Source: Macrostomum hystrix
Lineage: Eukaryota > Animalia > Platyhelminthes
Assembly (NCBI GenBank): GCA_950097015.1
Contig: CATNEN010000015.1
Location: 744,001 to 808,000, forward strand
DNA length: 64,000 nucleotides
Reading direction: 5' to 3'
Shown piece by piece: positions 28,887 to 64,000 of the stretch; position 1 is the first letter of the stretch; the number at the start of each line of letters is the position of its first letter. The notes under the pieces are model-generated. The model saw nothing but the letters and a program-made list of their open reading frames with translations, was not told the DNA's origin and did no database searches. Made by a program: the position numbers and the translations under genes.

Positions 28887-31800
28887 ATGCCATCCAGCAG
28901 TGGTGGCACCCAGAGACTGGTCTGCCCGCTGCTGCTGCTGGCAGCGGTGGCATTCGTACCGGCAGGGTGTGTCTTCTCCTTCAAGGATGGCAAGCAGTAC
29001 GTCTACGACATTGAGACACACACCAAAACCAAAGACGTCGGCGAGCTCATTATCACTGGACAGGTACATATAGCTGCTTTGTATCAATGAGGCTGGTCTA
29101 GGGAATGACAGTAAATAAGACACTCGTAAGCAGCAGAAGCTGATGACTTGCGACTGTTACTTGGTCAAGTTGGTGCACGTGCACTGTTTAAGGACAGCAT
29201 GGGTGCAGAGAGTTAAAAGTGCATGATGCCAAATACGCCTTGAATGGTTATATGTAGCAGTAGCTAAACTCCTCCTTCTCAGCTCCCCCTTTGAATAAAA
29301 TTTCAGTTCTCCATCCAGATGCAGAGCAGGGAGCCCGATGGGTCTCAGAACATGCTGCTCACTTTGAGCAAGCTGCACGTCCGGAACGGACGCGGCCAAA
29401 CAGCCGACCAGGGCAGCGACGTGCAGCTCGACCGTTGGTTCACCTTCCACCTGGACCGGGCCGGTCGGGTCAACCACTTTCGGTACCCGCCAGAAGAGAC
29501 TGCCTTCTTGGCAACGATTAAGAGAGGCCTGGTCACTGCGCTGCTAGGACATGACGAGGTTAGTGCAAGTTTGCTATCATTTTGTCACTCGAAGCTCAGT
29601 TAGGAGATGAAATAGATACCTATACCCATTCATTAATTCTTTCCACCGCAGGATTACAAATTCCAACTGACTCACGAGTGGAGCAGCCAGAACCGAACCA
29701 TTGGACGGCACCACACGGAGATCTCGAGGACCAGGCGTGGCATTCAGGGCAGCAATGTGCACCGAAACGTCACCCACGTATGTCATGCGCCCACAAGTAC
29801 ACAATATATTAGTCACTACATGAAATATAAATTGTAATTTTGATTTGATTGGATCATGATACTTGCAGACCATGCATTACAATCACGTGACGCGGCTACC
29901 CGATAAGACAATGATCCACGATGAGCTTCACGTCTTTAACAGTCCGCCGCCAGGGTGAGTGCAGTGCTGGAGCCGATTGGTTTCATAAAAAAATCCGGAA
30001 AGCAAATAATTTAACTTTTTAACTATAAACTTCTAGATTTGAATCGGGAATCAAAGCCAGGCAAGGCCGTATAGTCATGGACAGGGAGCACGAGGACCCG
30101 ACAACCGTCAGCAGGGTGACGACAACCGCCAAGACCGATTTCATCCTGACCGAAGTTCGCGACGCTGCGGCTGTTCAAAGGCCCGGAAAACTGGTGTCGG
30201 AGTTTATGAACCAGTCGAGAGTGAGCAGGGGGAGACTCAAAATGACTTTAAAGATAATTCCGCTTGCTGGGGCTGTGGTGAATGGGGATGCATCTGGGAG
30301 GCAATTTCGCATGCCGACTCCTCTGACCCTGAGCACTCGAACTGTTCATTGTCGGTTTCGATCTTATTGTCTATTTTTGAAGTTGACTTTCCGCATAGAT
30401 GTTTAGCAAAATTAGTAGCTCGTGGTATCATAACACTTGATCCCATTCTACAGTTGCATGAAGTCTTCAAATCCGACTACCAACTGGTTGAAATGCGCCG
30501 TAAGATCGACTCCAATCTTACTTGCATCGCCACGGATACGGCGGATCGTAAGCTAGCTCACTATCAGCCACTTGGCTAACTTAGGAAACAATAAACTTTA
30601 CGCTAACATTGAACTTTAATGACTTTTATAGCCACGTCAGACTCGATTGACTGCTACCAAAACCTGCTTGAAATCCTGACTGGCCTTTCAAAAGAAGATT
30701 TAAATTCGATTTCGAGTTCATACCTCAATCGACCGTACCAAAATATGTAAGCGGAAGCGATTTTGAGCTCTTCTCACATTGAATCGTTGCGGTAGTCCAC
30801 GTCAAGCTTCTTGTGTTTATTTTTGATAGCAGCTTTTTTTATTGAAGACAACAAACTGAATTTTGCTGAAATTTTCAGTACGGACATAATCGACAAGAAA
30901 AAATACCTGTCAATGATGGACGCGATCTGCAGCGTTGGTACCGTTACGTCAGATCTGATAATCAACAGGCTGATACTGAGGTCCACAAACCGACAGCCCG
31001 AGCTCGTTCAGCGGGTGCTGGTCTTTCTGCCCACGAGGAAAAATGCGCCCGCCAATGTGAGTCACACCTGAATTTCGACACCGAGTCACACCTCAGTGTC
31101 CTACCTGGAGCAATATTAAAAAATATTCAAACCTGTAAGTCAGTCGATCACACCTTGAAAAACTAACCCTGACTGCAGGCACTGGTGAACACATTGAGAA
31201 GCTTCGTGTTCAACCCGGAAAACCAACCGGATATCAACGACCCGGAGACCTACCACCGCTGCGTGCTGGCATTGGGTACAGTCTGCCACCTGATGCAAAA
31301 CTACGGCAACGAGCAGCAGAAGGCGATGGCCCAGAGCATCGTCAGCCAGCTCGAGAGACTGACAGGCGTGTTTGGTGAGCAACCTTCAGGCTGGTGTCTC
31401 GACTTTACAATTCTAATAAACGAAAACGAGGGCGTTAGTTTATTATATGCAATTTTGTGGGTTTTTCTATTACCAACCATTAAAAGCAAATAATCCGTTC
31501 CCGGACCGGAGTCACATTGATTTTCGAAGCTGCATTCTAAATGCCGAATTGAATTGCATCCAACAGATCCGTACCACCACCGAGCAAAGCGATCTGTGAT
31601 GGACGACGCAACATTCGAGCGGTACAACTTCCTGAAGTCTTCGCTTATTGATGCCCTTGGCAACGCTGCTTTTGAAAGCTCATTTCCAGTGATCCAGTCC
31701 TACTCCAATGAGTCTTCCGCGCCCTCATTGTGGAAGCGATCTGGACTGCACTCGATGCGAAAATACCCGACTGTAGAGGTTCGAGTCTTTCTAAAACCGA

Positions 31801-34800
31801 TAAACATCTCTAAATCTTCAATAAGAAGAAACTCACGATTTTATGCAGTATAAGAGCGTAGAGTTTCATTGGAGTTGACAATGTTATTAACTACTCAATC
31901 TGCAGGCTGCGTCGACTATTCTAACAGCGGCGCTGATGGACGATGAGGAGCACGTCAGGTACGAGGCCAGCCTCATGTACGAGGCGCATCCAGCAAAGAC
32001 CAAGGATATTGTGACGATGCATCGGGAGTTCGTCGAAGGGTATGATATAATAGCTAAACCCTGCGGTTTCTTAAACAGTGGACTTTGAATGAAGAAACTA
32101 ACCACTTGCGTAACTTTCCAACCTGCGTGTACAGAGTCCAGAACGGCAGTTTGCTGATGTCTCACGCCATCTCCAAGCGAAGCGCACTAGGTGAACCTGA
32201 TAAAATGTGGAAGGGAATCAATGCCAAGCTGGCCGCTCCGGCGATCAATTGGCAAAAAATGGTCGGCAGCGCGACCATCGGCGCATCCTTTGGCATGACG
32301 GCCGTTAATGAGCTGATTGTGAAGCTGGGTAAGACTCTTTTATAGTAATTAAGGCTTACTAAAAGAAGCCTAGCAGCCCACCACACAGAATTCCGTGCAG
32401 AAATTTGTAATACATTTAAAGCTTGTGAAACTTTGTCGGCGGTTAACATAGAATATATATACCCCTAAGTATGCCTCTCAGCTAAACGTTATTTCTTAAT
32501 CGATTTGATACTTTCAATCTGCGTTTATTGAGGGTGAAGATCCGCAGAGCTATTTGGCGTTTTGCGCACCATTAATTAATCAAAAAATGATTAAACTGCA
32601 TCCCTCAGCTCTGAGTGAAGGCCAGCTCAACGTGAACGTTCATGACGAAGTGTTCGCAAAAGGACACCTGGGCGTCATCGGGCGTCATATCGACTTCTTT
32701 ATCGCCCGCGTCTGCTTCCGCGGCAAAGTGGAGTACAAGATCAGCATTCTGAAAGAATTTGGAGTAAACAGTATCAAAGACTTGGTGAAAATTTACGATC
32801 GCACAATCGGAGCATTGTACAAAGGCATCAAGGGAGCCATCAATGGGTTCCGACGGCTCTTCGCGCCCAGCAACCCGACTCAGATTTTCACCGTAGTGAA
32901 GAACCTCCGCCAAGAGTTCCAGAGGCTACCCTATGTGATTTCTGACCTGGCTAAGTCTATAGTGCAAGGGGTGGACATTCTAGCTGAGGTTGATCCACTC
33001 GAGCTGCCGTCCCATGTCCGTCCTCTGTTCACTGTACTCAAGAAGATGGCCAGCCTAGCTAACGATATCAAAGCTGATGTCACTGGCTTCTACTATGTGA
33101 GTTGACAGCTACAGTCACTAAAAGTAAAAATATTTATATCTAGATATAATTTTACGCCTTTCTTTGTACTCACAGTAAAACTAGCTCATCTTCTGTATCC
33201 AACTGAATCTGTTTGCCATCCTCAGACCATGCACGACACCATACAGAACCAAATTCCCATGTCGGCCAAACAAACCAAGGAGGGTCTGGATCTCATTGTG
33301 CGCATTTTTCCAAAGATTTTCCGCGCTCCGAAGGAGGCTATCATGAACGCATTCAAGTCGTTCTTCCAAATCGGCATGGGAGTCAGCGGGCTGCTCGATG
33401 CGAAAAACCGGACACTGGAGGCATGCTTCTTCTTAAAAGGTGAGCTGAGCTAATGCCATCGAGCTAGTTCAAAGTCTCCTCAGATATATTTATTGAGAAT
33501 CAAGGACACGGCCAAATACGCTCGAATAGATAGCTCGATATGATATACGCGTAATAAATTAAAATTAGCGTTTAACTTCCCTACCTAACTCATTCCAACA
33601 TCAGATGAGAAGCCCTACTGGTGGAACCTGACTGATCATTACCGCAGTCTGAAGGCGGAGTTCATCGAGGCCCTGCGCCACGTCAACCGCGGCCGCGAAG
33701 CTGCCCTCGCACTCGAAGGAGCGCAGATGAATGCCACCAGGCCCTTCAATGTCATGTCGGACTCGGTAAGGATATTTACCCCTTCTTTCGCTTCCCTTGC
33801 GAGGCTCATCGTTTAGTTAAGCTCGCATTTGATACTGAGTATATTGACACACGCGTAAGACCTGAGAAAGGATTGCCAAGCCTTCCACATTTTCCAGGAA
33901 ACTTGGGCCACAATCATTTTTTTAGTTTTTCTATTCTACGAAAACAGTGCGTCTGGATATTTTTCCAAGGGTAGCAAACTCTCTGTACCACTCTTAATTC
34001 AATAACATCAAACTTTGAACCTTGATATCTGCAGAAAATTTCTATAATTATAAGCTAAGGCGTCTTATCACGTCCATATCGTCAGCTTATCGCTCAAGAA
34101 TATGCTTGCAATTTTTTGCGCCAGAAAATTTTTACTGACCAATTTTTTTGCAACCAAATCTTTAATCGTACCAGTAACTTTCGCACCTAAATTTGTAACT
34201 AAACGCAAGTGACAAGAATCAGTATGCCTGGAAAATGGATAATATTTTTAAGATGTTGCATTTTAGATTTGAAAAATAAAAAAGAGGTTTCATTTCGCAA
34301 ATATTTGAGCTTTAGCTGCAGCACTTATAAAAAATCAAGATGCAACAAATGGTAGTTACGCTGAAAAGTTGACACTGTAAATTTACTGATAATTTAGTAT
34401 ACATTTTCTATACTTTTCAGGAAACTATGCAGCTTGTGGGACTCCTCAAGGATGTTCAGGACCTACTGATGGAACCGCTGAGCGGCTTCCGCACCGCATT
34501 CAACCCCCTGGAGCAGCAGATTGGGGCAATTCTCCAAATCATCCGCAGTTTCAAAGAGGCTTATCACGGGGCCAAGGAGGCCTGGAAGACAATCAGGAGC
34601 ATCGTGGACGCGATCATGGGACCGAGAGCGCACTCCGAGTTCCAACGGACGTACCGGTTAGCCGGGTCGGGCTGCAAATCGGACGGCTTCTATCCAGCGA
34701 CCGCCGACGACCTGTGGAAACATCCAGGTGTTGACCTGGCCATTAAAGCCGGCGAGAAGGTGGTTGTGCCTTTCAAAGGCGAATACTACAAGGGCCCGGA

Positions 34801-37800
34801 AGGAACCAATCAGCTCATAATTGTTCCGAAAGGCTTCAGCATGGAACGATTTCATTTCATCTTGGAAAATGTGCACTTCAAAATGGACGATGACCGCTTT
34901 CAGGCGCAGGACTTGCCCGTGTTTGACATGCAGAGCGGAAACGACCAGCCCACCGAAGGACTGGAGCTAAGCGCCGGAGCTCAACTGGGTTTTGCTGGCA
35001 CAGCCGGTAAATGTGAAAATCACATTCATCTCTCCGCAAGGGCCGGTCCAAACAGCTACCTGGACGCCAGCAAGTACTTGGAGCCGCGAGTGATGAAGAT
35101 GCCGAAGTGGGAGCAGATTTGTGACGACTACAAGGTTGTCCTACTCAATAAAGTGATTGCTGAAAAACCAACCGTTGGGGCTGATGGAAGAAAGGATGAG
35201 GACACGAGTCCAGAAAGAGAGGCCACTGAGGAATCAGTGGAGCCGTTGGAGACAGATGAGAAAAACCTTTTCACGGAGATCTACGCAGAATCAGGCCGTC
35301 TGCCGCGCAATTTTCTTCTGGGAAACGTAAGCCAAGTGTTTACTGACATCCTCGACTTCCCGAAGAAGCTTGGCGTGGATAAAATTTTCGAGCGCTTCAG
35401 CCTGCGCCGCCTGCGCCTCGCCTATGTGGTGGCGTTCCTGGAGACTGAGATGATCCGCGAGAGCTTTGTGAAGACACGCGAGAAAATGGACCAGCTGCTA
35501 CTCACGGTGAAGGACGTCTTGGAGGACCAGCCGTGCCAGAGTCCCTACCTCATGTCCGACGAGGAGCTGCGCAATGAGCTCATTAAGAAGGGCTTTGCAA
35601 AGTCTGAGGTGGAGGCCATGCCGAAAGCCAGTCTCATTGACCGGATGAAACAGAGTGACTCTCGTGAGCATCTTACAGACTTTGTTTGCTTGAATCGGGG
35701 CAGCATCTAGGAGGAGCAGGAGTGGTTGGGCATAATTAACAATAGGCCTCGAGAACAGTCTAAATAGTCGCATCTGTACGATGTCTACCTGGGAACTACC
35801 GGCAATATTTACTTCCAGGCTGTCCGCTTCTGCAGTTGTCATTACCGAGACCAATCTACTGCCAGTTCGACAAGAGCTGCCTTTCTGTGGAATGCTGCGT
35901 CGACCTCAAGGTGAAGGTGTTCCGCAAAGCTGCCAAACTGTGGGCCCGCCTGGATCCGTGCGGCAGCAGCAAGAAGCTGGAGTTCGGACTCAAGATGAAG
36001 CACGTCAAGGCAATTGTGTACACTATCGATTTCGATAAGTTTTTACCTGAAGGTGATGGCGCTTATGATCGTTACTTATATTTTTACATTTACATTTATA
36101 TGTTTTATATGTTTTTGCAATCAGCTTGGTTATTCAAGCTTGTGGCTCTGGGCTCTATGATACTCACATAAACTCAACCTTTCAGACTTTGAGGAGAAGG
36201 AGATCTGGTTGCCCGATGCTCTGCAGTTTCTAAAGCTGTTGAATATGAAACTAAAGCTGAATTACCAGTTCGTAAAGTCTCAGGAGGCCCTGATGTTTAG
36301 CCTTCGTCTGTCTGTGTGCTCATCCAGCAGCAAGTGTGAGTTCGATGTCCAGGTACTACAGGAGCTCGTGTTGCCGCTTCCCATCTGCAAAGACGGAATC
36401 ATCACCTGGCCCAAGCTGAACTGGCAGCAAGTGTTGAACAAGAACCACCTAAAGTCGGTGCTGCAAAAGACATCAACCTCGGTCATCAACGCCCTGATGC
36501 AAAAGTGGTGGGAGGATCTCCTGCAGCTGATGGGTCTTGGAGACTTTGCTGATGTCTTCAATGCCAAGACCTGCTCATTGCCAAACAAGGTTTCGAACGA
36601 GGTACTGCTAGACGGCCTGCGGGAGCGTGGAGTTCAGGTAGTGGACTCCGGCAACAAGACGCTGCTAGTTCAGTTGGCCGAGCTGCATTTTCGCCGATGT
36701 CGCAACGGGCCAGTGAAACTTGAGCTGCCGCAGCTGCCGCCGGCGCTAAGGAGTCGCGTCTTCTGCCAGGCGTCGCCGAACTGCACCAAGTTCGAGTGCT
36801 GCATGGGACTCGAGGCTTCGATCCGGGGATTCGAAATTGCCAAGTACTTGCAAGGTGCCATTCTATGGAATTTGTCGAAACTTAAATACGAGCTAGAAAA
36901 ATTATTCTTAGTTAAGACAAGAGTGTTGTCGGTAAAAACTAATATGTATTATTGAAATGCAGTTTGCAGTTTGATGCAGACAGTTGTACAGAAGGCGCGA
37001 TAAATCACTAAATATCAATGCATCACTATATCAACATATCATACTTCGTATTTAACTGTTGACTTACTTACTATAAAGCGAAACTGTTCGATAACATTTC
37101 AGGCTGGGCAAAAATGGACCCCTGTACTCTGACCTTCAGCTTCGGCTTCAACTCGCTGACTTTCAACAAGGTTCTGTTCGCCATTCCTTATGGTAGAGAA
37201 TTCGTGCAGAATGTTGGGGCTTTGAAGCTCAAGTAAGTTACTCCATTCCGTTCCACTATCATTGACGTTGGCGAAAATGATAGAGCATGATTGAAACAAT
37301 AAGATTTCAAAATTAAAACAAAAACATCAGGTATCGATTCGACCAGAACCCGGTCAACACGGAGACGCCGCTGTTCAGCCTCCAGCTGGCCATCTGCCCG
37401 GGCTCCTCGTCCTGCCTCCTGGACTACATCAGCGTGCTCAACCGGCTGCCGGTGCCCGTGCCCTTCTGTGGTAACGACTGGCAACGAGTCTTGCCTGGCA
37501 ACACCGACAAGCTGGAGGACTTCCTCAAGGAAGTCGGCGCGTCCGCCAGCCAGGCCGCGCTGGACAAGGCCGCGGAGATCCTGCTCGCAAGGACAGGTCT
37601 CACCAACGTCCTTTCTAAGGGCAGCTGCGCACGGATGAGCAACTTCACGGCCTGCCCGCACGTGCGGCTGCCGCAGCTGCCGTCCAACCTGCAGTGCCGA
37701 GTGATGGACAACTGCCTCGGCGTCGAGTGCTGCCTGGACTTTGCACTCAAGACCAGCAAAGTGGACCTCAGCTTCCTTAACTACCACGCCAAGGCCTGGA

Positions 37801-40800
37801 TTCTGCTGGACACCTGCGACTACATCAGCTCCATCGGCATCGGGAGGCTGCACTTCAACACCTCCCTGCTGGGAGCTCACTGGGGACAGAAGAAGTCGCA
37901 GTGGATCGGCAGTAAGGCAGTTCGGCTGGAGTGAGTCCCATTCTGCTTGCTGCTTTTAGGAGGAACTCTTTATTTACTCTCAAAGTTATGTTTTCTTGAC
38001 TTTAGCTACTCGGTGGACAGAGATGGCAAAGACTACTTGAGGCTGGACTTCGGCATGACAGTCTGCTTTACTGACAGCTGCGAGTTATCTGTTCAGCTGC
38101 TAAAGGACGCGCTGGTGCCCCAGCCCTTCTGCCACGGCAACTTCACCGGCGCTCTGCCCGGTGGCTCATTGGGCGACTTTGCTAAATTGCTCGGCGACAA
38201 GGCTTCTGAAGCGGCGTTGCAGACAGCCTGGGAGGCGGTGGTGCGCCGACTAGGCCTTCAGAAGGCATTCCTGAGCCCACCCCAATGCGTGTTGCCGTCA
38301 AACACTTTTAATAATGGCTGGGATAGCCGTGAGTTCAAGATTTTGGTTCTCTTGCATGCCAGCCTGAGTTCGCTGACGTAGCAAAACTATTTAGCAAGGC
38401 TCGAAGCTAACCTTGTATATGTCATTGGTCTCACAAAAAGAATCGAAAATGCGTTACTACAAGCGAAAATTTGTAACTGAACTGAATTAAATGCAAAAAG
38501 TTTTCGCCTTCAAGAAAAATTGCATTGGAAGTAGGTCTTATGCAAACCCTTGACAGATTTATCGCAAACCTTTCTGCAGGTTGCCCCAAGGTGTTCCATC
38601 TACCAAGACTGCCCAACCAGGTGCGCTGCCACCTGAATGAGTTCTGCATGGGAGTTACCTGCTGTACTGAGTTGGATTTCAAAGTGTTCAAACCCACTGC
38701 GCTGATGTCATTGGTCCTGGATCCCTGCGAGTACAAGTTCTCCATCGGCTTCAACAACATGTACTACAACCAGACTCTCTACTACTACCAGTGGGGCCAG
38801 GTCGAGACGTTCAACCTGGGGTCACCTCTGCAGATCATGTGAGCAGAACACCAGCGAGTATAATGTCTAACTGCAGCATTCTTCAATTGCTTGGCTTGAA
38901 ATAGATTTTCAATCGGAGCTAAAAAATGATGGTCTCGATTTCGCGCTTTCCAGCTACACGATCCGCAAGGACAGCGACCGGCGCCTGTTCATTGTGGACC
39001 TGAAGCTCAGCCTCACGGTGGACTCGGTTCGCACAGACTTCGTGCTGCTCGAACACTCCATGGTGCCGCAGGTGGGCTGCAACATGAACGCCTCGATCAG
39101 CTTGCCTGGTGGCGGCCAGGTCAAGGACTTCATCAGGCACCTGACTGAGACTGGCGTGCAGAAGATCACTGACGAGGCCGTCCAGGCCGTGCTCAGGCAC
39201 CTGGGCATCGGCGACCTTATCGACTTCGAGGGCCACTGCGACAACAGGACCGGCTTTTTCAACCGTAAGTCCTCATCCATATGAACTCTCAAGTAGATTT
39301 GAGTAGTTTTGTGATCTCTACATGTAAATGCACCTACAGAGAGAAGCTGAAGCTCCCCAGGTCCCCAGTCAAGCGCTGCCCGTCCGATGCCCTGAAGGAA
39401 TAGCAGAGAGGCAATTTTATGATACTCACAACTCAGAAATGTCAAAATCACGACACTCAGGCGAACTTTAGCAGGGTTTCAGCGTGGAGCAAGGGGTGTG
39501 GGCAGCCTTGATCGTGAACTCATATTTACAGCTCAAAAGGGCCGAAAGAAGGCGCACGGGTGCAGTTGAGATGTACATGCCGTGATGAGGGGGGTTTATC
39601 GATAAATTCGAATCCGGGTGGGGCTAGCCGACTGGGGCGAGGCAGAGAGCAAAAGAATGTCCGCAGAAAACGTCCATAAGAACACGGGTAAGGGCTGCAG
39701 CACAAAAAGAGATTACGAGTATGTCCACATGTTTGATGGTGTAGCCTAAGTACTTACACATATTGGCAAGTTGTTTAATTGCTTCGACTTCATTCAAAAT
39801 GTTCTGTTCCTGCCGAATCAAACACCGAATCGCTCTCCAGACTGTCCGCTGTTCAAGAGCTCGGCGAACGCCCCGGCGGGTTTCTTGCCGGGCACCTACT
39901 GTGACCTGTCAGCTGACTGTCGGATGCTGAGCTGCTGCGCCGAGCTCAACATCCTCATCGCCCGCAAGGCATTCGCGCTCGCCGTGTCCGTCGACCCCTG
40001 CGACTACAAGCTGCTGATTCGGTTCGAGAAGATGGCGCTGAGCAAGTCTCTTTTCCGCTACGACTGGGGTCGCAGGGAGTCGTTCGACCTCGGCAAGGTC
40101 ATCTTCGTGAGGTCTGACAGCACGCCATGTTGACCGATGCGAATTGCTTGTTTGATTTGAACTCAAATCTAAAAATCTTTGATTCCGCTTCCAGCTTCAA
40201 GATCGACAAAGACCCCATGAAGAAGCTGTTCTTCGTAGACCTGGATCTGCAGGTGAAGATCGAAGGAGACACCTTGACTCCGGTGGCCTTCCTCAACAAC
40301 TTCGCCATTCCGATTCCGATCTGCAACCCGAACGCGTCCATCAGTCTGCCTGGCGGCTCCATCGGCGACTTCGTGAAGGAGCTCGGCGGCAGCATCACCG
40401 AGAGCGCCATCGAGGCCGTCCTGCGGCACCTGCGGCTGGAGGGCGTCATCGCCACGCACTCGAACTGCCAGCCCGAGAGTCCCAAAGGTTCGCAGTTGTT
40501 TTCGCTGCTCATTGCCGCTCGGCTTTTTAGCAATGCGAAACGGTGATGGCAGTCTGATGAAGTGTCCCGAAATCTCACACATTCCAGTCTGCCCCGGCCT
40601 GTCGCTGCCTCAGCACATCCCGGACCCGCTGAAGTGCCACCTCAACCAGCACTGCATGGGCATCGAGTGCTGCATGAGCATGGATTTCAAGATCAAGCAG
40701 CTGTCAGTCAAGGCCTGGGCCTTCGTAGATCCGTGCGACTACAAGTTCTCAGTGGGACTGGAGAACTGGAAGTTTGAGAGGCCATTGTTCACGTTTGACT

Positions 40801-52800: not shown

Positions 52801-55800
52801 TTTTCTTCAGGCGGTTGGAGGGGTCTACGTGTGCTTTTTTCTGTGCGGTGGAGCGCAGCTGACTGGGTACATCATGGACACGCGCTTTCCAACGCGGGCC
52901 GAGATCGGGTTCAGCAAGTTTCCGCTAGATGTGGGCCTCATTCTCGATGTCGAACTGGTGCCACTCAGACTGCAGCTTGATGCTATCGTGAAGCTGGATC
53001 TAGACTTTAAATTTTTCAGAATCCGGTATGCAATTATAGCGATTTCTTAACATCTGTCACATCTTAATGTAATCTAATTTATCATCACTATCTTAAAGCG
53101 ATGCGGAAAAAAATATAACAGAGGTAATTATTTTCAGAAAAACACTTTTTAAAGCCGCCATCTGGAAGTACGCCGCGCCGAAGATTTCGCAGAACGTACT
53201 GAACGTTCGCAGCGGTAAAAGGGATGACACGCCGCCTCGGATCACGGAGATGGAGTCATCGCCGGACAACGCCTTCGCAGTTGCCAAGGAAACAAGGCAC
53301 TGCCGAGTGGCGCAGCTCAGAGGCAGGGACGTCATGGATCCAGCCTTCTTGCTGGAGATTCAGGCGGAAGACGATGTCAGCCTGCTTTCTATGACCTACA
53401 GTATTGGAACAGCTAAGGGCCTTGCCGATGTGGTTAGTGGCGAGGAGTTTAAAGGACCATCTGCCATAATTTCCAGGGTAAGATCTCTTCTGACGGATAG
53501 CTTTGCTTTAAACGGATATTCACCCAAATATCGCCGCCTTCAAAATCGCTGCTGTTCACTGCAGGTACTTCCTCACAGCATTCCACTGTACTTCACGGTG
53601 AAAGTCTCTAACAACCAAGGAGATGCGGTTCACGCGACGTGCGACCTGCCAACGTACGACGTTACACTACCTAGAGGTCGGGTTCAGGAAGACTTCCAGA
53701 GCAGCAGCAATCCGAGGATTCTTTCTGCTTTCGTTGTAGCCAGTGATGATTCGCCCATCATTGAGACCAGCATTGCAGTTGGTCTTGGTGTTGACGTTGG
53801 TGGTGAAAGCCACTCGCTGTGGAAAAGGCTTGACTTAAGCAAGGATGACCATATTAATGGTAAGTAGCGATTCAGTAAATATTGTCCGAATTATCGTTTC
53901 TTTGCGAGCCAAATATGTCGCCACTAACAAAATGAAATGTTCCGAAATTTCAGATGGCTATCACCTGAACCATTTCTCCGCTCCAAAACACGGCCGCCTA
54001 GCTAGCGGAGTTTTCGTAACGAAAACAAACATCCTCGTTGCTTTCCTTTGCGCCGAAGATTGTCTAAAGCTAGGAGACAAATGCAGAGCATTTAACTATC
54101 ATTGTAAGCATTGCGATGTTTCCTTTAATTTTCCTTGAGTCCGTGTTTTGGTGTGGGTATGTGTTTCAAATAGGTAATGCTTAGCAAAAAAATTATAACA
54201 TCAATTTTAGCGGTAAGCAAGGTCTGCGAAATGACGCATGACATTCTCGGCCATCGTCTCAGCCTGTCTGACAGCAACAGCTTTGCCTACTACGAGCGAA
54301 AGTCGGTGGGCCACTCGGTCAATTTCTTCCAAGACAGTTTTAGTCTGCGGCATAATAATATTCACTTTGTGAATCTTTTCGTCAGAAATGCACTGGGCTA
54401 CACTTCCATTTTATCATCACAGCCAATATTAACAGACTTTGACCCACCACACCCCGGCTACGTTTCTAACACATCAGTTATTGAAACAGTTTACACTACT
54501 TGTCGAGAAAAAATCATAAGAAAATGGTGGGACAGGTGTGGGCCTGTGAAGCCGCAAGATGCCAACAATGTGGTTCGAACAGAGTTTGAAACTGAGCTGA
54601 GAAATCACCGCAAAATTATCGACGGCCGAGGCTCGCGAACTTTGTTCAACGGACACGACCGCATGGTCGATGTCAGGTGGACTCGCGCCAATGAGTTCAT
54701 GTCCGCCAACTGGGACGGCCTGCACGACAATGAGACTTCAATTTTCGGCATCACCTGGGCAGCGGGCACGGCCATCTGCGCAACCGACGTCAGCCTCGGC
54801 TTCGGAGATCCGCACGCCCACCTCGGCCACGAGTCCCAGTGGACTCACGTCGGCAGCATCCATCCTATTCCCAATCCGATTTACAAGGAGAGCGGCCTAC
54901 CGGATGGCAAGTACTACTCAACAGTGCGGGCTACTAACAAAGTGGAATTCGGCGGACCCATGACGCTGACTCTGTGCCACTGGAGGCCCATTGTAGTTGA
55001 CAATTCGCCACCACTGGTGCACCATCTGACGGAAATCAAGTTTGAAGACGAGACTCTAAAACTAACCGGCTTGTACAACTTTTCGTAAGCACTCGTATTA
55101 TTTTATAAACTTAAATTTTTAGTATTCTATCAGAATACAAAGACAAGTCACTCAAAGCTGTAAATAAAATATAAAGGGCTCGTACTGCGAGAGTTCAGCA
55201 TCTTAGTTCTTACAATTGATGCAAAAATTTTTCTATTATTTTACTCGTAGAGATACTACGGGGTTTTAAGTTTACTACGATGTAAAGTACGAGCTTATCG
55301 TGCAAAAATTCTAAACCTCGCTTTTAGCGATCCACAGTCCGGAATCAAGGAGTTCGACATCGGCCTGGGACGCACGAAGTTCGACACGATGGTCTTAGCC
55401 TTCCGGCGGATGCCTTTCATAGGAACGCCAGATTTTGAGGAGGACGTGCTCGAGTTTTCAAGCTCCTTTGCAATGACACACAGGCTACCTGACGGTGTTC
55501 CAGTCTGGGTTATCCTAAGGGCCGAGAACAGCGTGAACCTCAGCTCGGTGCAGCACGCGGACCGGCCGATCCTGATCGATCTGACACCGCCGATCGCAGG
55601 TTATGTCCTGGATGGAAGCGAATTCAAACACGACGCGGAGTTCGTTGGAAAGCCGGATCGCATGTGCGTTAACTGGTTCGACTTCAGAGACGATGAGTCG
55701 GGCATCGCATTCTATCACTGGCAGCTCTTCAAGGAGGCAGAGGAGATTTACCGTATCGAGTTCGTCGACAGCCACAAGCAGGTCCTTTGCATGGAGTCCA

Positions 55801-58800
55801 GCCTGGCCGGCGGTCAGGAGCTGCAGCACAATGTGCGCTATCACAGCGTCATCACTGCCGTGCACTACGGCCACAGGGAGCTGGCAGTGAATGCTTCCAG
55901 CAGCGGCATTCTCTGCGATCTCACCTTCCCTGTTGTGGGTGACATTGTGGACGGTCTGGCTGCGGACTTCACTGATCTTGTGTACTCATCGAATGCTGCG
56001 TCAGTGAGCGCTCAGTGGCGAGGCTTTTCAGACCCAGAATCGGACATTCAAGATTTTGCAGTGATTGTTCAAAAGTTTATTCCTGGTCTTGGTGAGTGGA
56101 CTGCGGCAAGGACAGGAAAACAACTTTCAAGAAATGCGAGCAGCATTCAGTGGAACCACTTCCATTTTATGCACAAGGACTTCATCAGAGTTCAGATTAA
56201 GGTGACTAATAAAGCAGGCAACTCAAACATAACTGCAACATCTGGAGTCCTTATCGATTTAACTAAGCCAGTTGTAAACAGACTTTATGACGGGCTGGAC
56301 ATTACGAAAGACATTGACTTTCAATCATCCATGGATACTATTTCGGCAAACTGGGACTACAGCGATCCGGAGTCTGATGTCACGCACTACCGCTATCAAA
56401 TATTTGAGCTATCGCAAGGCACGAAGCACCAAATCTACCCAGGTAAGTTATGAATTACGTATATAGAGATATAAAATAGTCGGAATTCTGATCACTATAA
56501 ACTTTCTAATTCACTCTCGACATCTCTACTTCAGTCAAGGAACACGACTGGAGCGAGAAACTTCCACCCAACACCACGCATATCGAGCATCGCAATCTAA
56601 AGCTAAAGTTAGGAGGTCGCTACTTTGTAAAAGTTCTTGGGCAGAACGGAGCATTGCTGAGGCAGGCGCAAGAAACCAGCGGACTAGTCGTTGATAACAC
56701 TCCACCGGCAATGTACTTTGTGAAGGTTGACGTCTCGCCTGGAGAGATGGAACAAGCACAGGGCGGGTACGTGCGACAAGCTGACAGAACTGGAATCAAG
56801 GGCTGGTGGCATGCTGAGGATCCAGAGTCCAACATTTACGAGTATTTCGTGGCCGTTGGAGACCAACCTGGTAGGCTAATTTCAATAAATAAACATCTAT
56901 AAAATGTTGTTTTAAATAATTGTATTCTATTGCATCTGATAATCCAAAAATACTCCAGGCTCATCAAACTTGCTGAACTGGACGTCAGTATCTCGACTGA
57001 ACTCCAAAAGACTGTCTCTTGATGAAGAACTGAATGTGACTGACCCAAAAACTAAACTGCCAGTCTATTATGTCAGTGTATTTGCCATCAACGGAGCCGG
57101 TTTGATCAGCGCAACTGCAACATCAACACCTATCATGATAGTTGGCCAGGACGCTCCTGGGTATCTTATGGACGGTGACCAGCCCAGAGTGAACGGCCGC
57201 TATCAGTCTAGCTCTCGCTCGCTAACCTGTCAGTTCGATGGTTTCCACAGTCCACTGTACGGAATCAACCACTATGAGTGGGCGATCGGGTCCAGGCCAA
57301 TGTCCGAGAATGTGCAGCGCTACACTCGCGTTGGCATTGTACTGCATGATGACGTAGACGACTTTGTCAACTCTGACGATGCGGAGCATGAGGGACTTCC
57401 GTCTTCAGGCCATGCCCAGATGCCCATCCGCCTGGAACATGGCAAGGCGTACTTTTGCACGGTTCGTGGCGTGACCAACGCTGGCTACATTCTCGAGGCC
57501 TCTTCTGACGGCATCATCGTGGATCGGACTCCACCGTTCGTTCGAATCACGGACCTGGGTCTTCCTGATGGGTCCATGCCGCTGACACAGTCATCGATCT
57601 ACTCAGAGACGGTGGACTCGCTCACTGCTCAGTTCGAGTTCAGTGATCTCGAGAGTGAAGTGACCTTCGCCTCCGTGATGTACGGCGAGCATCCGCTTGG
57701 AGACTCGCTGTTCAGACGCGACGGAATCGATCTAGGAGCCAAGGACAGGTCAGGTGTGACTGCGGATGATCGGGTTCATCCACAGTCGGATGGACTGCCC
57801 AACATTTTTACTGCCATCGTTGTCAATGCGCTTGGTCAGAAGAACATCACCTCCTCAGCGCCTGTGGTCTTCGACTCAACCCCGCCAACTGAAGGTACTC
57901 TGAGGTGCCCAAAGTTCACCAAGGTACACACTGGATGGTTTCAATCTGCTTGTCACTGGTTTGATTTAAGAAGTTTATAATTATTGATGACTTTCCCTCG
58001 CATTCTAGTCGTTTAGTCCACTCTCCTGCCATTGGGAGGGCGTCCAAGACCCGCAAAGCGAAATCGACTACTACTCAGTGATGATTGGCGAGGCTGAAGG
58101 ACGGGCCGAGATCCTTCTTGGCAAGAATGTCAGCGGAGATGCGACTTCATTCACTGTTCACCGTGAGTGGAGGATATTAATAAGAAGGCTATTGAAACTT
58201 GTCTCACATACTACTCTTACAGTCAGAGCTCAGATCAAGCAAAATGTAAACACAAATTTCTCCCTGCAGCGAGTGACTTTTCGGCCGCAATGGTGCACAA
58301 CAAGGACTATTACGTGACCTTGACAGCGTTCAACAAAGTGAAGTACTCCACAAAGATCTACTCTAGCGCCATCATTATTGACGACACACCGCCTGAGCAC
58401 TCGGTTATAGTTGAGCTGTCCGACAGAGTCCAGCTGCTCAACGGTTCCATCCAGGCTGACAACCAAAAATGCGTCGATGCGGAAAGTTGTCTCAAACTCG
58501 ACGTCACTTGCCATCTTGGTCTCGACACATTGGCAGTCAGTTGGGTACCGTTCCGGGATCCAGAGAGTGGAATCTCACGGTTCGATTTTTGATGAAGCTA
58601 TGATATTTTTATCAGTAAATTTTATGTTCTTTTCTCATATACACATATGGTTGTCAATATAAAACTCCTGCAGATACGAAATTGGACTTGGAACCACACC
58701 TGGCGCGACGCAAGTGATGGATTTCGCAACAACACCCGCTGATTCATATACTTATGTTTTTACTGGAATTCCATTGGCAAACTATCGCAGACTCTTTGTA

Positions 58801-61800
58801 GTGCTCAAAGGGTTCAACGGTGCAGAGCACTTCTCTACTGTTATCTCCAGTGGTGTGTACATCTCCCGAGTCGGGTCTGACTTAGGCTTCCACAGCCCCA
58901 TAACGGTTAGCGATGGCGATCACGTTGGCAAGGACATGTAAGAGACGTATGTGCTATTTTTCACTTTTCTGGATGCCTTAACACCATCCTATTTGCCAAA
59001 ACTTCAGCGACTTCCAAACGAATGTGGAACAGCTCACTGCCTGGTGGGACTTCAGCGGCGAACCTTGCCCTGTTGTTGATTACAGACTCTACTTTGAGCG
59101 TCTTGATGGTCTAGTTGTCCAGAACTTTACTAGTGTTGGAGGTAAGAGTTCTTAGAGATATGCAAGCCTTATTCCGTTGTGAGACGCTGACTCACCTTAC
59201 GTTGCTTCTGACGCCTCGATTTCAGAGCGCACAAGCGGAAGTCACATCGGACTTAACCTGCAGAACGGAGAGACCTACTTCGCAATTGTCAGTGGCACTA
59301 CAGCACTCGGGCACGTCATCACTGTTCGATCATCAGGAGTGGTGATTCGCCTTGAGCCAATCATCCCTGGCCACGTCTTCGACGGCTCGGTCACGGGCAT
59401 TGACCTGCACAAGCAAAAGTCCCACACGCAGCTGTCTTCCAACTGGATGGGCTTCGGAAACGACACGGTCCTCATCAAACCCAACGGAGGCGGCTCGAGC
59501 TCGGTGGACAAGCTGGGCGAACGACAGGTGATTGACTACTACGAAGTGGCCTTTGGAACTGACCGACGCTACCCCAAGACCAGAGACAACGTGCTGCCGT
59601 TTGTGAATGTGGGTCGGAACAAAACGTTCACGGCGTACAACCTCGATCTCGTCCCAATCAAGGGGATCTACTATGCCACGGTTCGCGCCTATTCAAAAGG
59701 ATTCGCCTCAACGGAGGTCACGTCTTCGGGCATCCGAGTGGGCTATGACTCGACAGTTTTCAGTAAGCAACGTAGGAAAGTATATTTTTAGATTTTGGTT
59801 TACCAATTGAAATCCGGCAACTGTTTCAGGAGCGGATATCAACGTGCCGCGCTTCGTGAGCACCGAAAACGCAGCCGAGCACTCAGAGACCAGCTCAGGC
59901 TTGTTCCACCTGAGATATTCTTGGGGCAGGTTCAAGTCAGCATTGAATGAGAAGCAGGAGCTGGAGATAGTGTCCTATTTCACAGGAATATCCAGCATGC
60001 CGATTCCGGGAGACACCGACTGCCACAAAATAGTAAGAAGAGAGAATAAAGTTCTGCATTCCAAATCACCCTGGGCAGGACAAAACTAATCAATGGCTGC
60101 ACTTTTCAGCTAACACATCGGGATAAGATCGGCTATGTGTTCAACTTCACATTCGACGTTCAGTCGCTGATCTCAGTGAGCACTGACACCATGGTGAGGC
60201 TGACTGACCTCGAGCTCAAGCAGGCCGAAACTTTGTACATAATCGTCATCGGACTTGACGAAGCGGGCGAGTGCAACGCCTCGGTTTCCAGCTTCTTCTT
60301 TGACAACAACCCTCCCACAAAGGGTGAAATCACAGCGGGGCCGTTCTACAACATGGTGAGCCCTTGCCTTTGTAATTCTTCATTAAACGAGTTTTGAATG
60401 CAGTTAGACTTTTCATAACCAAAACACGCCAACGCGTCTTAGAAACTGACGTTCTCTGTGGAGGCTGGTGCCCTGCACGTGAAGTGGCGAGGCTACGAGG
60501 ATGCGGACTCCGGACTGTCGCACGTCAAGCTTCAGTTGTGGCGCGCTGCAGGCTGCGCTGCCGCCGATTTGGTGAACCTGACAGCGGTGCTAGACATCAC
60601 GGGCCTGGAGGCCTCGGTCAAAATTAACGATACCGTGGCAATTACCGAGCTGACATTCAGAGACCTGGATCTCGAGCCGGGAGTGCCCTACATTGTGACA
60701 ATTGAAGCCGAAAACCGAGCCGAACTGAAAACCAGAGACCAGACAAGCCCGATACTTCTGGACACGTCCCTACCCAAATCGGGCTCCGTGGTTGATGGAT
60801 CCAACTTCACAGAAGACGCAAGCTACTCGGGCAGGTCAGACTCCCTGACGGCCACGCTGCTCCATTTCCCAAAAGCTTCAGCTGATCCCTGTCCGCTGAG
60901 GAGTCCCAACCGCATCGAGTGGCAGACACTGAACACAGCCGGTCTGTGGAACATGGACGAGTGGTGGAGCTTGCGGTTCCGCCACGATCTGGCGTCTCCC
61001 ATCGGACAAGGCGGCGCTGACTGGGACCTGCACCTGGAGCGAGACCTGACATCGGCCAGGGTGCTTTCCAGCGCGATTCAGGCGGATTCTCATCTGGGCA
61101 TTGGTGCTTCGTACAGCTTCAGAGCGCGTGTAGCGAACTCAAGTCACGTGGTCACCAGTCTAGTGCTTTGGGACGGTCCCGCCGGGGTGGTGGGCGACAT
61201 CGATTATGTTCCAGAGGAGGACTGGTCCCAGTACACATGCAGCTGCTGCGTCTTCCCGGATCCCGTGGCGTATCCCAACTGCAGCGACATGTGCGAGGGT
61301 TGCACACCTGAGTTTCTGGACTACCTGAGAGTCAACATGAGTCGAGACCTCAGCCGACCGCCCCCAACTCCTAGACCAACGCGAATTCCTGGGTCGAAAG
61401 TGATTGAGAACGTTCTGCCTCTACCAGACGATACACTCCGCGGTGATTTTGACAACATCAACCAAGTGCACTCAGCGTGTGGGCTGCAGATCCTATACGA
61501 GCCAGCTGACCAGCCAGCCATTGTGTTGTGGTGCACACACGCCAACAAATCGTTTCCTAGCGTTAGTGATCTAGTATCCCTGAACTTCGATCCGAGTGAG
61601 GATCTGCACAACTACACGCTGCATATGTTCAGCGTGGCTCAAGACTCCGGGCACAGAGAATGGAGCGCTCGAGTAGAGGTTGATGGTGCCGTGGTGAGCG
61701 TTGTTTCGGGCCTTCCGAGCATGCCTCGAGCCCGACTCAGCCTGTTCGCTCACACCAAGGCCAACTTTGTTCCACCTCTAGACACAGAAAATGTGCTCGA

Positions 61801-63956
61801 TCGCTGGCAGGCAGTGGTGCAGCTGCGAGACGTTCGGCTGCCACAGCCAACGACGGAGAAGTGCCGCTACGGTAAAGCCTTCATCGCTGGCACCAACCCT
61901 ATTGTCGCCTACAGCGCCGCAGCGTTCTGGAACGAAACCCAGGTGTCCGAATGGCAGCTTTTGCACCAGCCCTGCATTCCGTGTCTGCATCCGTGCGACC
62001 ATCTGCACTGCGATCCTAGTTGCCGAGACAGCGGATTCACTGAGGTGCGCTTGACTCTGCCGCAGCTGAAGTTAGTAGATGGCGAAACCTATCAGGTTGG
62101 AGGTGAGTGCAAATCATTGCTTCATCTGTCTGCTTCCTTCTGCTTCCTTCCTTCCTGTCTGAATATTAAAAGAAGCAGAGTGTTTCTTCCGCTGCAAGAC
62201 ATTGCATTAATCGTAAGCTTTAGCTTTTGAATACAAACAATTTTTTTCAGTCAAAGCTACCCAAGCGAACGGTGAGTCGTCAGTTTCTTTCAGCTCAGGG
62301 CAGCTTGTAGACACGACGCCTCCAGAGGTGGACAAAGAGGCCCCTCTGTTCTACAATGATCCCAGTTCGCCATATCCGTTTGCACCCACGAATTACACGG
62401 CTTCACTGACCTCAATCGGAGTTGTCTGGCTCATTACCGACAATGAGTCACTCATTAATGTAAGTTGCAAACAAATGTTGATATTAAAATCGCTAATTCT
62501 ACGAGTACTTAAGAAAAGACACTTATGAGCAATAATGTGGCATCTTTCTACACGACAGGAACACTTCTGGGCCCTTGGAAGCGCCCCAAAAGGCACTGAC
62601 TTGCAGCCGTGGACGTCAACAGGTGCAATTCCCGGCGGTTTAAACACTGAGCTGGTTTTGATCAACGGCCGAAAGTACTTTGCCAGCGTGCGATCCATCA
62701 ATAATGCAGGGCTTGCCACCACCTACTACGATCATCTAGGACTAACCGTAATGACAGATCCGCCAAACCTGGACAGTGTCAACGCCAGTCTCGTTGGAGT
62801 CTCCGACTTCGACTTTGACGTGTCTCCTTCTGACGCAAAGAAGCAAACGGACCAAAGTGTGCTTGGCGCCCGCTTGACGTTTGATCTCGACAGAAGTGTT
62901 GAGTACTACGGTGAGCACCATTTTGTCGTGATTTTAGCGACTGTTATAAATCTCTAGAACCTATCTTCAAGCCAATACTTAGCATTGGAAATAGTTTAAG
63001 TCTGCTCCCATTCTAGAGTTCTGCATCAGCAGCGCAGAAGGCCAGCTCGACGATGTTCTGCCGTGCGTCCCGGCGCCGAAAATGAACGATTCTGATGCCG
63101 GTGTAACCGTACAGATCAGGAACAACACCATCCAGTGGAATGACTTTGACGGTGCGGAGCAGAACTTCACCTTATCTAGTCTGAACAGAAACACGTCAGC
63201 TGAATCCGTGAGAAATAGATTCTACTTGGAGCCTGGAAAGTAAGTATACTTCAAGCGGCTTTGTTCTATTCAACTTTGGCTATATGTTTTCTTATGAATC
63301 ATTTTTTTAGTTTATTAGGCTAAGGTTTTTGCATCCCTGTCATTTTATGTTCAAAGGAGACTTAAGTTCTTTTTTTCGCATTGCGTTATAAAGCAACCAA
63401 GCTGTCAGTGTTAATGCTCTTCACACACAAAAATCCCTCCCCAGGACAATCTTCATCAACCTTCACGCCTGTACAAAGGCATACGTGTGCGCCAGCCGAA
63501 CGCTCAGCAAGCAGACGATTGTCCCGGATGACTCGTTGGTAATTCAGATTGCCCGGCTGAATTCGCAAGCCCTGCCCATGCAGTACAACTCAGAAAAGCT
63601 GGGCATGCCGGAGGTCAGAGCTATCGGCGCCTATCCAAACGGCACAGCCTTGTACTTTGAGCAGCTGACAGATGAGCGAACAAAGGCGGACTACGACTCA
63701 TCGGCTGCCGCACCGTACAAGCCGTACATTGTACACCCGGAGTGGACCAAGCACCGCACAGGTCGACTTTTGACGCGACGCATTCGGGAGTTTGGCAGCG
63801 TCTTTGCCATCTCGCCGATCGGTAGGGCAAGCGTTAAGCTGCAGGTCAAGAAGAGTCAGCTGCTGGCCCCTCCAGTTGATGACGGCTCAGGTGCACGGAG
63901 CCGACGAAGTGCGGATGAGGACGATGCGGTGGACAGCCTGATATACTGGGACGCGG
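28887..63956 (+). CDS. Giant secreted multidomain protein (vitellogenin/LLT N-domain, helical region, M23/LECT2-like domain, 21 Cys-rich repeats, PAN, >=15 FN3-like modules); ~64 exons, ~8,700 aa, probably 3'-incomplete
   Basis: Manually spliced from ATG 28887 through consecutive GT-AG introns with matching phases and no internal stop. First exons: 28887-29063, 29307-29558, 29652-29777, 29869-29954, 30037-30220, 30454-30547, 30632-30746, 30879-31056, 31179-31374, 31567-31778. Longest exon 49036-51785. The last exon starts at 63445, with a likely donor G|GTGCGT after 63956. Hydrophobic signal peptide (LVCPLLLLAAVAFVPAGC). The plus-strand ORFs in the track are its exons read into introns. Confidence 0.9.
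28960..32330 (+). other. Large lipid transfer (Vitellogenin_N-like) domain within the giant gene
   Basis: FSFKDGKQYVYDIETHT immediately after the signal peptide; beta-barrel segment WFTFHLDRAGRVNHFRYP..ATIKRGLVTAL; alpha-helical segment CVLALGTVCH..LIDALGNAA..HVRYEA. These resemble the Vtg/MTP/apolipophorin N-module. Confidence 0.7.
34640..35090 (+). other. M23-family (LECT2-like) zinc metallopeptidase-fold domain within the giant gene
   Basis: HxxxD motif HPGVD (34721-34735) followed by VVVPFKG; HxH motif HIH (35021-35029); C-terminal DASKYL, like LECT2 DPTAYL. Confidence 0.75.
35820..51070 (+). repeat. 21 tandem ~170-190-aa Cys-rich protein repeats within the giant gene
   Basis: Counted by the recurring core C-x(4-5)-C-x-G-x-x-CC..R-x-F..(D/N/E)PC..GFE-x-W..WG..IG..P-[VI]-P-x-C..W-P at about 35950, 37120, 37810, 38720, 39990, 40730, 41710, 42570, 43250, 43950, 44510, 45070, 45860, 46400, 47025, 47710, 48230, 48850, 49510, 50080 and 50765. 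Confidence 0.9.
39490..39600 (+). mobile_element. Diverged internal fragment of the same SINE family, in an intron of the giant gene
   Basis: CCTTGATCGTG..ATTTAC..AGGGCC..AAGGCGCA..GTTGAGATGTACA..GATGAG aligns by eye to the SINE body at 12260-12330. Confidence 0.4.
52176..52455 (+). mobile_element. SINE copy, diverged, in an intron of the giant gene
   Basis: Degenerate A box GGTGGCAGATCGG and B box GCTCGATTCC, then GGCGAGGCCACATTTATTTGGGGCGCAGC and GATGAGAAAGTCAGGGCAGATG.ACACA.CTGTGTG, near-identical to copy 1. A degraded 3' motif AATTG.TCTCGCTGGC lies at ~52427-52441. Confidence 0.75.
53220..63700 (+). other. String of >=15 fibronectin type III-like modules within the giant gene
   Basis: Recurring boundary motif D-x-T-P-P-x(2)-G-x-V-x-DG (e.g. 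DLTPPIAGYVLDG, DLTKPVVNRLYDG, DTSLPKSGSVVDG) followed by W-x-x-F-x-D-x-ES-x-I-x-x-Y and Y-x-x-V-x-A-x-N-x-AG. Confidence 0.8.
53990..54240 (+). other. PAN/apple domain embedded in the FN3 region of the giant gene
   Basis: Spliced sequence LCAEDCLKLGDKCRAFNYHSVSKVCEM has the PAN C-x3-C-x(5-6)-C-x-x-F-x-Y-x(5)-C pattern. Confidence 0.6.
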
Positions 63957-64000
63957 GTGCGTTGCTTTCGCAATTATAATTCCGTTTTGTGTAATGGACT

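Follow-up and report, generated by a model that had tools for sequence, protein, structure and literature searches.

A giant Macrostomum hystrix gene joining a lipid-transfer-type head, an M23 fold, 21 cysteine-rich repeats and a string of FN3-like units

Introduction

A 64,000-nt stretch of the genome of the flatworm Macrostomum hystrix (GCA_950097015.1, contig CATNEN010000015.1, positions 744,001 to 808,000; hereafter the window, to which all coordinates refer) carries one very long coding region on its plus strand. An initial annotation described this region as an intact gene for a secreted protein of >8,700 amino acids (aa), in which a signal peptide and a module of the large lipid transfer protein (LLTP) superfamily are followed by an M23 peptidase fold, 21 unassigned cysteine-rich repeats and a string of fibronectin type III (FN3) domains. 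LLTPs are soluble lipid carriers, namely yolk proteins, lipoproteins and MTP. The locus thus raises three questions: whether it is a single gene, what kind of protein an LLTP module heads here, and where that protein resides.

We found one expressed gene whose architecture is shared by about 75 uncharacterized proteins from several animal phyla. Judged as a whole, from sequence comparison and structural models, the product seems somewhat likely to be a membrane-tethered, furin-processed stalk protein of the LLTP family with a ligand-binding head. The evidence for each part of this reading, and the explanations that compete with it, are presented below.

Results

A single expressed gene

From 28.8 kb to the window end, the plus strand was densely coding with short introns. 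Exons were chained by dynamic programming: codon log-odds were trained on the long open frames, splice sites received generic weights, and phase was tracked. The first-pass chain from the ATG at 28887 had 62 exons and 8,553 aa with zero internal stops, and its frame stayed open to 63979. After corrections from RNA and from a protein of Macrostomum lignano, the refined model comprised 64 exons and 8,646 aa (~967 kDa), and its 63 introns (median 98 nt) were all GT-AG. A homology-boosted chain of 8,975 aa (model3) was rejected, as it keeps introns that RNA shows to be removed. The true length of the protein in the visible gene is about 8.6-8.9k aa. The initial figure of >8,700 aa is within this error, although the refined model itself is slightly shorter.

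Transcript evidence came from four small public RNA runs of one organism, in which ~82% of the words of a 2.8-kb exon were present. Contigs were placed on 48501-54500, which is 6 kb of the 35-kb gene; they were spliced and had 0 mismatches over 3.1 kb. They confirmed the junctions 48925/49036, 51785/51883, 52149/52811, 53025/53138 and 53477/53565, together with the donor at 53859 and the acceptor at 54211, making six modelled junctions in total between 48.5 and 54.5 kb. A 150-nt exon that the model had skipped was revealed by its two joints, 53859/53954 and 54103/54211, in contigs of all four runs. One spliced contig of 3,153 nt started at 50520, inside the last cysteine-rich repeat, and ran through five further exons past 54500. 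Because this single contig spans both, the repeat array and the C-terminal module are on one mRNA.

Two or more adjacent genes, or a decaying repeat array, might mimic a single frame. Such an artefact would fit the placement of RNA on only 6 kb of the gene, and some database relatives are indeed annotated as two neighbouring models (KAK3609658 and KAK3609660 in Potamilus, KAL3862601 and KAL3862603 in Sinanodonta). Against it stand 8,646 codons over 64 exons without a stop, the uniform GT-AG introns, the RNA contigs that bridge the junction between repeats and C-module, the M. lignano protein that bridges the junction between head and repeats, and single RefSeq models that hold all parts in several phyla. 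Among the homologues, P0116, P0108 and P0004 have the head and repeats within one model, P0104 and P0002 have the repeats and C-module within one model, and P0111 (Acanthaster), P0131, P0134, P0146 and others contain the N-module, repeats and C-module together. Since the RNA bridge is joined by relatives that link the parts in single models, little room is left for a two-gene artefact, which we regard as very improbable. The sequence from 28887 to the window end is one expressed gene. The initial annotation was therefore right about a continuous, spliceable, stop-free frame and a single gene.

A family of uncharacterized giant proteins

The family was assembled by an exhaustive HMMER search with the 942-aa exon, followed by two word-index searches with long homologues. 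The HMMER search gave 103 representatives, all of them 'hypothetical' bivalve or amphioxus proteins, the best being ~26% identical. In all, about 75 'uncharacterized' proteins from cnidarians, molluscs, an annelid, echinoderms, a hemichordate and amphioxus share the architecture. They include proteins of sea stars and a brittle star (7,338-7,606 aa), of limpets and other gastropods (7,473-7,954 aa), of many bivalves, of the annelid Owenia, of the hemichordate Ptychodera and of corals and a soft coral, as well as several amphioxus paralogues. A nemertean (Lineus) protein carries the cysteine-rich repeat, according to a cluster look-up among the matches of the first search. All of these taxa are soft-bodied, mucus-covered animals, and their phyla include both marine and freshwater forms. 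No vertebrate or ecdysozoan protein was among ~180 matches, but these searches were limited and are no proof of loss.

The M. lignano protein P0116 (3,631 aa, annotated as 'Vitellogenin domain-containing') is 80% identical to, and collinear with, aa 25-3740 of our model, which points to a paralogue or to the gene of a sister species. Sea stars, limpets and clams have full-length RefSeq models (~7,300-7,950 aa) in which the domains follow the same order, and the initial annotation was right to mention uncharacterised giants in marine invertebrates. Six amphioxus proteins (P0123, P0126, P0128, P0129, P0139 and P0143) are short forms of 4,200-5,200 aa, in which a head of LLTP, M23 and SAP parts is almost directly joined to the C-module, with a single cysteine-rich repeat. 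Some of them have two NPAY motifs in the tail. Automatic annotation has misnamed one of the short forms HEG1 and others FAT1 or JAG1.

Full-text searches with domain words and locus names found no published description of the family. It is present in public databases only as automatic predictions, and the earlier statement that no characterised protein is known with this architecture agrees with these searches.

Domain architecture

The features of the gene are listed in Table 1. From the N-terminus, the order is: signal peptide, LLTP barrel and helical head, long helices, LECT2-like M23 domain, SAP-like motif, 21 repeats, a conserved unassigned module, a PAN/apple-like domain and 19 FN3-like units. 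All four parts named in the initial annotation are real; the SAP-like motif, the PAN/apple-like domain, the conserved module and the convertase-type sites had been overlooked.

Table 1. Features of the giant gene in the window
Feature	Position	Strand	Basis and remarks
Whole visible gene	28887..63979	+	Exon chaining; collinear blastp to P0116, P0108, P0111, P0104 and P0123; RNA splice joints
Signal peptide MPSSSGGTQRLVCPLLLLAAVAFVPAG	28887..28967	+	Hydrophobic segment aa 10-32; aligned to homologue N-termini
LLTP N-terminal module, beta-barrel and helical (HEAT-like) domain, equivalent to Pfam Vitellogenin_N	28992..32328	+	Pfam matches of homologues; AlphaFold2 proxy
RAKR, in helical domain of head	31581-31592	+	Family consensus RQKR (RxKR)
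Five-strand short sheet, then ~300 aa of very long helices	32609..34618	+	AlphaFold2 proxy: strands 605-686, helices 694-995, pLDDT 50-77
M23 / LECT2-like domain	34619..35134	+	HPGVD at 34721-34735, NHIH at 35018-35029
GRLPR, minimal RxxR after M23	35294..35308	+	RKKR or RRKR in most relatives at aligned columns ~360-370
SAP-like helix-extended-helix motif, then conserved Cys	35555..35653	+	Pfam SAP (PF02037) in 13/26 homologue segments
21 copies of ~175-aa repeat, 10 conserved Cys each	35612..51050	+	jackhmmer/hmmsearch, per-domain E down to 1e-73
RSKR, furin-type site right after last repeat	51189..51200	+	Motif scan
Conserved ~270-aa module, signature FPTRAEIGFSKFPLDVGL at 52886-52939	51681..53363	+	Alignment of 23 homologues, mean column identity 43%
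PAN/apple-like domain: RNA-found exon and start of next exon (to ~54311)	53954..54103	+	Encoded over both exons
19 divergent FN3-like units, ~110-120 aa	53361..63538	+	hmmsearch; motifs TPP..G.V.DG and W.GF.D.ESGI.Y
Non-FN3 Cys-rich insert, ~317 aa, CSCCVFPDPVAYPNCSDMCEGC ... CIPCLHPCDHLHCDPSC	61165-62310	+	Interrupts FN3-like string; no Pfam match
3′ end	63956..63979	+	Candidate donor G/GTGCGT at 63956/63957, or in-frame stop at 63977-63979

Pfam searches with 20 single exons of the window gave nothing useful: LLTP, M23 and FN3 went undetected, and for the LLTP module a single exon is too short to score alone. PDB sequence searches with single exons were blank or spurious. Because single-exon Pfam searches were uninformative, domains were called through homologues, profiles and a structure model.

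The protein begins with MPSSSGGTQRLVCPLLLLAAVAFVPAG followed by C. The basic n-region, the hydrophobic core at aa 10-32 and the PAG/C site are consistent with the signal peptide that had been annotated, and homologue N-termini also have Met and a hydrophobic stretch at the aligned place. Pfam Vitellogenin_N was found in P0116 and P0004, in P0108 (E 1e-11) and in numerous further relatives. An AlphaFold2 (AF2) model of the head was built on residues 1-1200 of P0116, which served as a proxy for the 80%-identical window sequence. Its mean pLDDT was 67, with 80-90 in the helical domain. The model runs from a barrel through the helical domain, a five-strand sheet and ~300 aa of very long helices to the M23 domain. 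Its best PDB matches were MTP (E 4e-15), lipovitellin (5e-13), bee vitellogenin and apoB100 (range 4e-15 to 1e-7). LytM-type peptidases and EnvC came next; EnvC, a coiled coil with a LytM domain, matched at E 7.5e-5. The annotated LLTP module is thus present, and by these profile and model matches the head belongs to the LLTP superfamily, as an undescribed branch of it.

DUF1943 (PF09172) was detected in none of the ~75 family members, and the AF2 proxy has only the five-strand sheet, then the long helices (pLDDT 50-77). In the model, this short sheet and the long helices appear to stand where the usual lipid-cavity sheets would be. As noted initially, no vWD domain is visible; none was found in the window exons or in the ~75 relatives. 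As in vitellogenin, apolipophorin II/I, apoB and MTP, the signal peptide precedes an N-terminal beta-barrel and a helical domain, and a conserved RxKR site inside the head resembles those of apolipophorin II/I and insect vitellogenins. Unlike in these LLTPs, long helices, an M23 domain and ~7,500 further residues come after the head, and neither DUF1943-type sheets nor vWD was detected.

The M23 fold was also upheld. Pfam Peptidase_M23 matched 23 of 26 aligned homologue segments (the window copy is below threshold), the family profile hit LECT2 first in the PDB (E 6.5e-4) and then LytM (0.019), and the fold of the proxy model matched LytM and lysostaphin with TM-scores of 0.60-0.66. The likeness to LECT2 extends to a 'GC..G.Y' stretch before the GVD motif. 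EnvC, a degenerate bacterial LytM factor, likewise has long helices and then an M23 domain. LECT2 itself is a free cytokine of 16 kDa; in the window gene the domain is one module of a protein of ~1 MDa.

Does this domain cut peptidoglycan? One alternative is that the whole protein is an immune effector or pattern-recognition molecule, with M23 as an active zinc peptidoglycan hydrolase and the LLTP head binding microbial lipids as vitellogenins do. HPGVD and NHIH in the window copy make up a full H/D/H zinc triad (H-x3-D ... H), found in 6 of 48 members, i.e. the window copy and five relatives. The fold matches to LytM and lysostaphin and the presence of a PAN/apple-like domain also suit this alternative, and vitellogenin N-domains are known to bind lipopolysaccharide, lipoteichoic acid and peptidoglycan. 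However, the position aligned to the catalytic His260 of LytM is Glu in the window copy and His in none of 47 members. No more than 27 of 47 members retain the first His of HxH, and no more than 9 of 48 the first zinc-ligand His, in which the family differs from LECT2 and from LytM factors. The best sequence match, moreover, is LECT2, which is not a peptidase. We consider the immune-effector alternative unlikely. As in non-catalytic M23 proteins, a catalytic His is lacking in this family. Since one catalytic His is absent across the family, the head would bind a ligand or a partner protein rather than cut peptidoglycan, and we read the M23 module, from its sequence, as a LECT2-like binding module and not an enzyme.

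For the SAP-like motif, the best homologue match had E 1.3e-7. The window copy is below threshold and aligns in register, and the family profile matches the MKL1 SAP structure (E 0.011). A SAP motif in an extracellular position is unusual.

Basic convertase-type sites recur at three aligned places of the family: in the head, after M23 and after the repeats. Basic clusters aligned with the RSKR site are RRxRRD and KRELS in echinoderms and RRKRS in amphioxus. These motifs suggest cleavage at furin-type sites.

The cysteine-rich repeats

The count of 21 repeats was confirmed by jackhmmer and hmmsearch. The repeats of the window gene are only 27-31% identical to each other, and because of this low mutual identity we consider them old and individually maintained. 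For a two-repeat exon, AF2 run on an alignment of 65 rows gave a model of mean pLDDT 87, in which each repeat has a head of two short helices and then some nine strands arranged as a beta-sandwich.

The repeats had been called unassigned, and they stay so. They have no Pfam match, and Foldseek with the repeat model found no match in the PDB (TM-score ≤ 0.15). A search of AlphaFold database clusters returned only family members, one coral protein and one sponge protein, and an Atlas shape search returned mollusc hypotheticals only. In a wide VIA search the best Z was 6.5, for the N-terminal domain of FAIM, under the stated noise level of 7-8. The N- and C-terminal domains of FAIM (Z 6.5 and 4.6, both below noise) were the sole PDB chains to cover the whole repeat sandwich (88/90 and 82/89 residues), which is a lead only. 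Another such lead is arthropod Pfam DUF4773, whose clusters were the nearest named ones by language-model features (score 0.87, 188 shared features); a HMMER comparison of 65 repeat pairs did not detect DUF4773 even at E 1, and the last profile search gave two close relatives only.

Two observations on single repeats may be recorded. For the repeat at 45632-46153, the nearest Atlas cluster by language-model features was a 166-aa 'hypothetical protein' labelled Nucleocytoviricota (0.93, 204 shared features), unconfirmed by sequence. The genomic Logan contig SRR24204725_1010053 (L001, 2,827 nt), which stems from a different public run, contains, at 1357-2406, a two-repeat exon 95% identical to window positions 45632-46672; it is an allele, a paralogue or a sister-species version of the same gene.

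The number of repeats varies among lineages. Cnidarians and Owenia have 0, and the short forms of amphioxus have 1. Echinoderms and limpets have 12, the other molluscs (bivalves and Gigantopelta) 14-25, and the window gene 21. The head and 18-20 FN3-like units are constant in bilaterians, and cnidarians have ~30 FN3-like units. A variable repeat number with a constant head and FN3 string suits a spacer role for the array.

The C-terminal part of the visible gene

The ~270-aa module after the repeats had no sequence or profile match in the PDB, and an Atlas feature search was uninformative. Pfam PAN_1 (PF00024) matched P0111, P0128 and P0002 at the position of the RNA-found exon; the Cys pattern of the window copy, which lies over two exons, is visible in translation. 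The FN3 string of the initial annotation also held up. A profile of 46 FN3-like units matched almost only FN3 domains in the PDB (contactin-1 at E 7e-7, then titin and fibronectin), and Pfam fn3 itself matched 13 of the 46 units.

The 3′ end and a probable membrane anchor

The initial annotation ended the gene at 63956, the position of a candidate donor, and called the protein intact and secreted. Neither word is supported by the relatives. The window protein was still aligned to full-length relatives at its last residues, and homologues extend 360-800 aa beyond the aligned point. In relatives that reach the C-terminus, the 550-800 aa after the last FN3-like unit comprise a cadherin-like/Big_9 region, EGF, one transmembrane helix and a tail, with NPxY/F motifs in some tails. 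A single transmembrane helix was found 35-270 aa before the C-terminus in all 20 full-length or near-full-length relatives. It is thus fairly likely, on this alignment, that the gene continues beyond the window, and the visible frame is then incomplete. In that event one would expect a type I membrane protein of ~9,200-9,400 aa.

The competing possibility is a wholly secreted giant scaffold, similar to lipoproteins, that ends at the in-frame stop and serves in yolk, egg coat, mucus or adhesive. Besides the stop, the LLTP head is in keeping with secretion, isoform X3 of amphioxus P0126 stops ~40 aa past the aligned point and has no transmembrane helix, and the convertase sites could release everything distal to them. 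This possibility is opposed by the helix in 20 of 20 relatives and by the good donor ahead of the stop. The vWD, polyserine and DUF1943 regions of yolk proteins are also missing. We think a wholly secreted product improbable. With a membrane anchor, a yolk carrier would be the least likely of the functions guessed initially, which were yolk or egg coat, mucus or adhesive, and defence. The adhesive proteins ap1 and ap2 of Macrostomum are built differently, with vWD, C8, TIL and TSP-1.

Other observations in the window

Within the 661-nt intron 52150-52810, RNA contig depth at 52101-52500 was 400-1,000x, compared with ~12-60x on the flanking exons. The peak was sharpest at ~52220-52264, and many unrelated loose ends were seen in the region. 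The peak sequence (gagctcgattccgtggcgaggcca...) looks similar to the T-arm and 3′ end of a tRNA, and is therefore probably a SINE-like fragment common to many transcripts. Rfam gave no match on the window.

Upstream of the giant gene, a 995-aa stop-free frame (1029-4013, plus strand) matched nothing in Pfam and showed no likeness to members of the giant-gene family. The region 6000-10000 has a strong negative GC skew (-0.35 to -0.39) and many overlapping minus-strand frames of 130-250 aa, with only weak Pfam matches of low-complexity type (Soyouz_module). It looks like a repetitive, acidic coding or satellite-like block.

Discussion

How might such a protein work? As a best guess, we picture a scaffold at the cell surface that is processed by furin and displays a ligand-binding head. 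Past the window, the protein would continue with a cadherin-like part and EGF, and a single transmembrane helix with a short tail in the cytoplasm would make it a type I membrane protein. A stiff stalk, estimated at >100 nm and made of the FN3 string together with the disulfide-locked repeats, would then hold the LLTP/M23 head far above the epithelial cell surface. There the head might bind a hydrophobic or microbial ligand, or a partner protein, with no cutting of peptidoglycan. Convertase cleavage would leave the distal part either released or kept non-covalently, as in transmembrane mucins or apolipophorin II/I.

Known proteins resemble this design in part. Usherin, a giant FN3-rich type I membrane protein, also has a long FN3 string, and the relatives of the window protein have, like it, a single transmembrane helix and a short tail. 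The possible proteolytic split between distal and membrane-proximal parts recalls transmembrane mucins. However, there is no sequence relation to either beyond FN3, and neither laminin domains nor mucin-type Ser/Thr-rich repeats are present; the spacer here, unlike theirs, is a disulfide-rich globular repeat. We know of no characterised LLTP that is membrane-anchored, and in this the relatives of the window protein differ from the characterised members. We class the protein in an undescribed branch of the LLTP superfamily whose members are almost certainly anchored in the membrane.

Several points weigh against a tethered stalk protein with a ligand-binding head. The in-frame stop lies only 7 codons past the candidate donor, and the C-terminal region with its transmembrane helix, beyond base 64000, is taken from relatives and not seen in the window gene. 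Furin cleavage is based on motifs, and the site after M23 is merely RLPR in the window gene. Unlike most relatives, the window copy of M23 keeps the full H/D/H triad, so some metal-dependent activity is possible. Lipid binding by the head is doubtful, because cavity sheets of the DUF1943 type were not detected, and the model of the N-module is only moderate and comes from a proxy.

A bolder proposal can be made, which we hold to be rather unlikely. The family might represent a new class of animal cell-surface receptor, a tethered LLTP whose lipid- or microbe-binding head would be carried >100 nm out on a stalk with a previously unseen 10-Cys beta-sandwich. Such a receptor would have been present in the cnidarian-bilaterian ancestor, and vertebrate LECT2 would have arisen from its M23 module.

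If true, a conserved, anchored LLTP branch of 7,000-9,000 aa with a LECT2-like domain would widen the roles supposed for the superfamily. The 175-aa repeat, with a confident model and no solved counterpart, is a good target for structure determination, and the link to LECT2 is a lead on the origin of that vertebrate cytokine. As Macrostomum is amenable to RNAi and in situ hybridisation, the function of the protein is directly testable.

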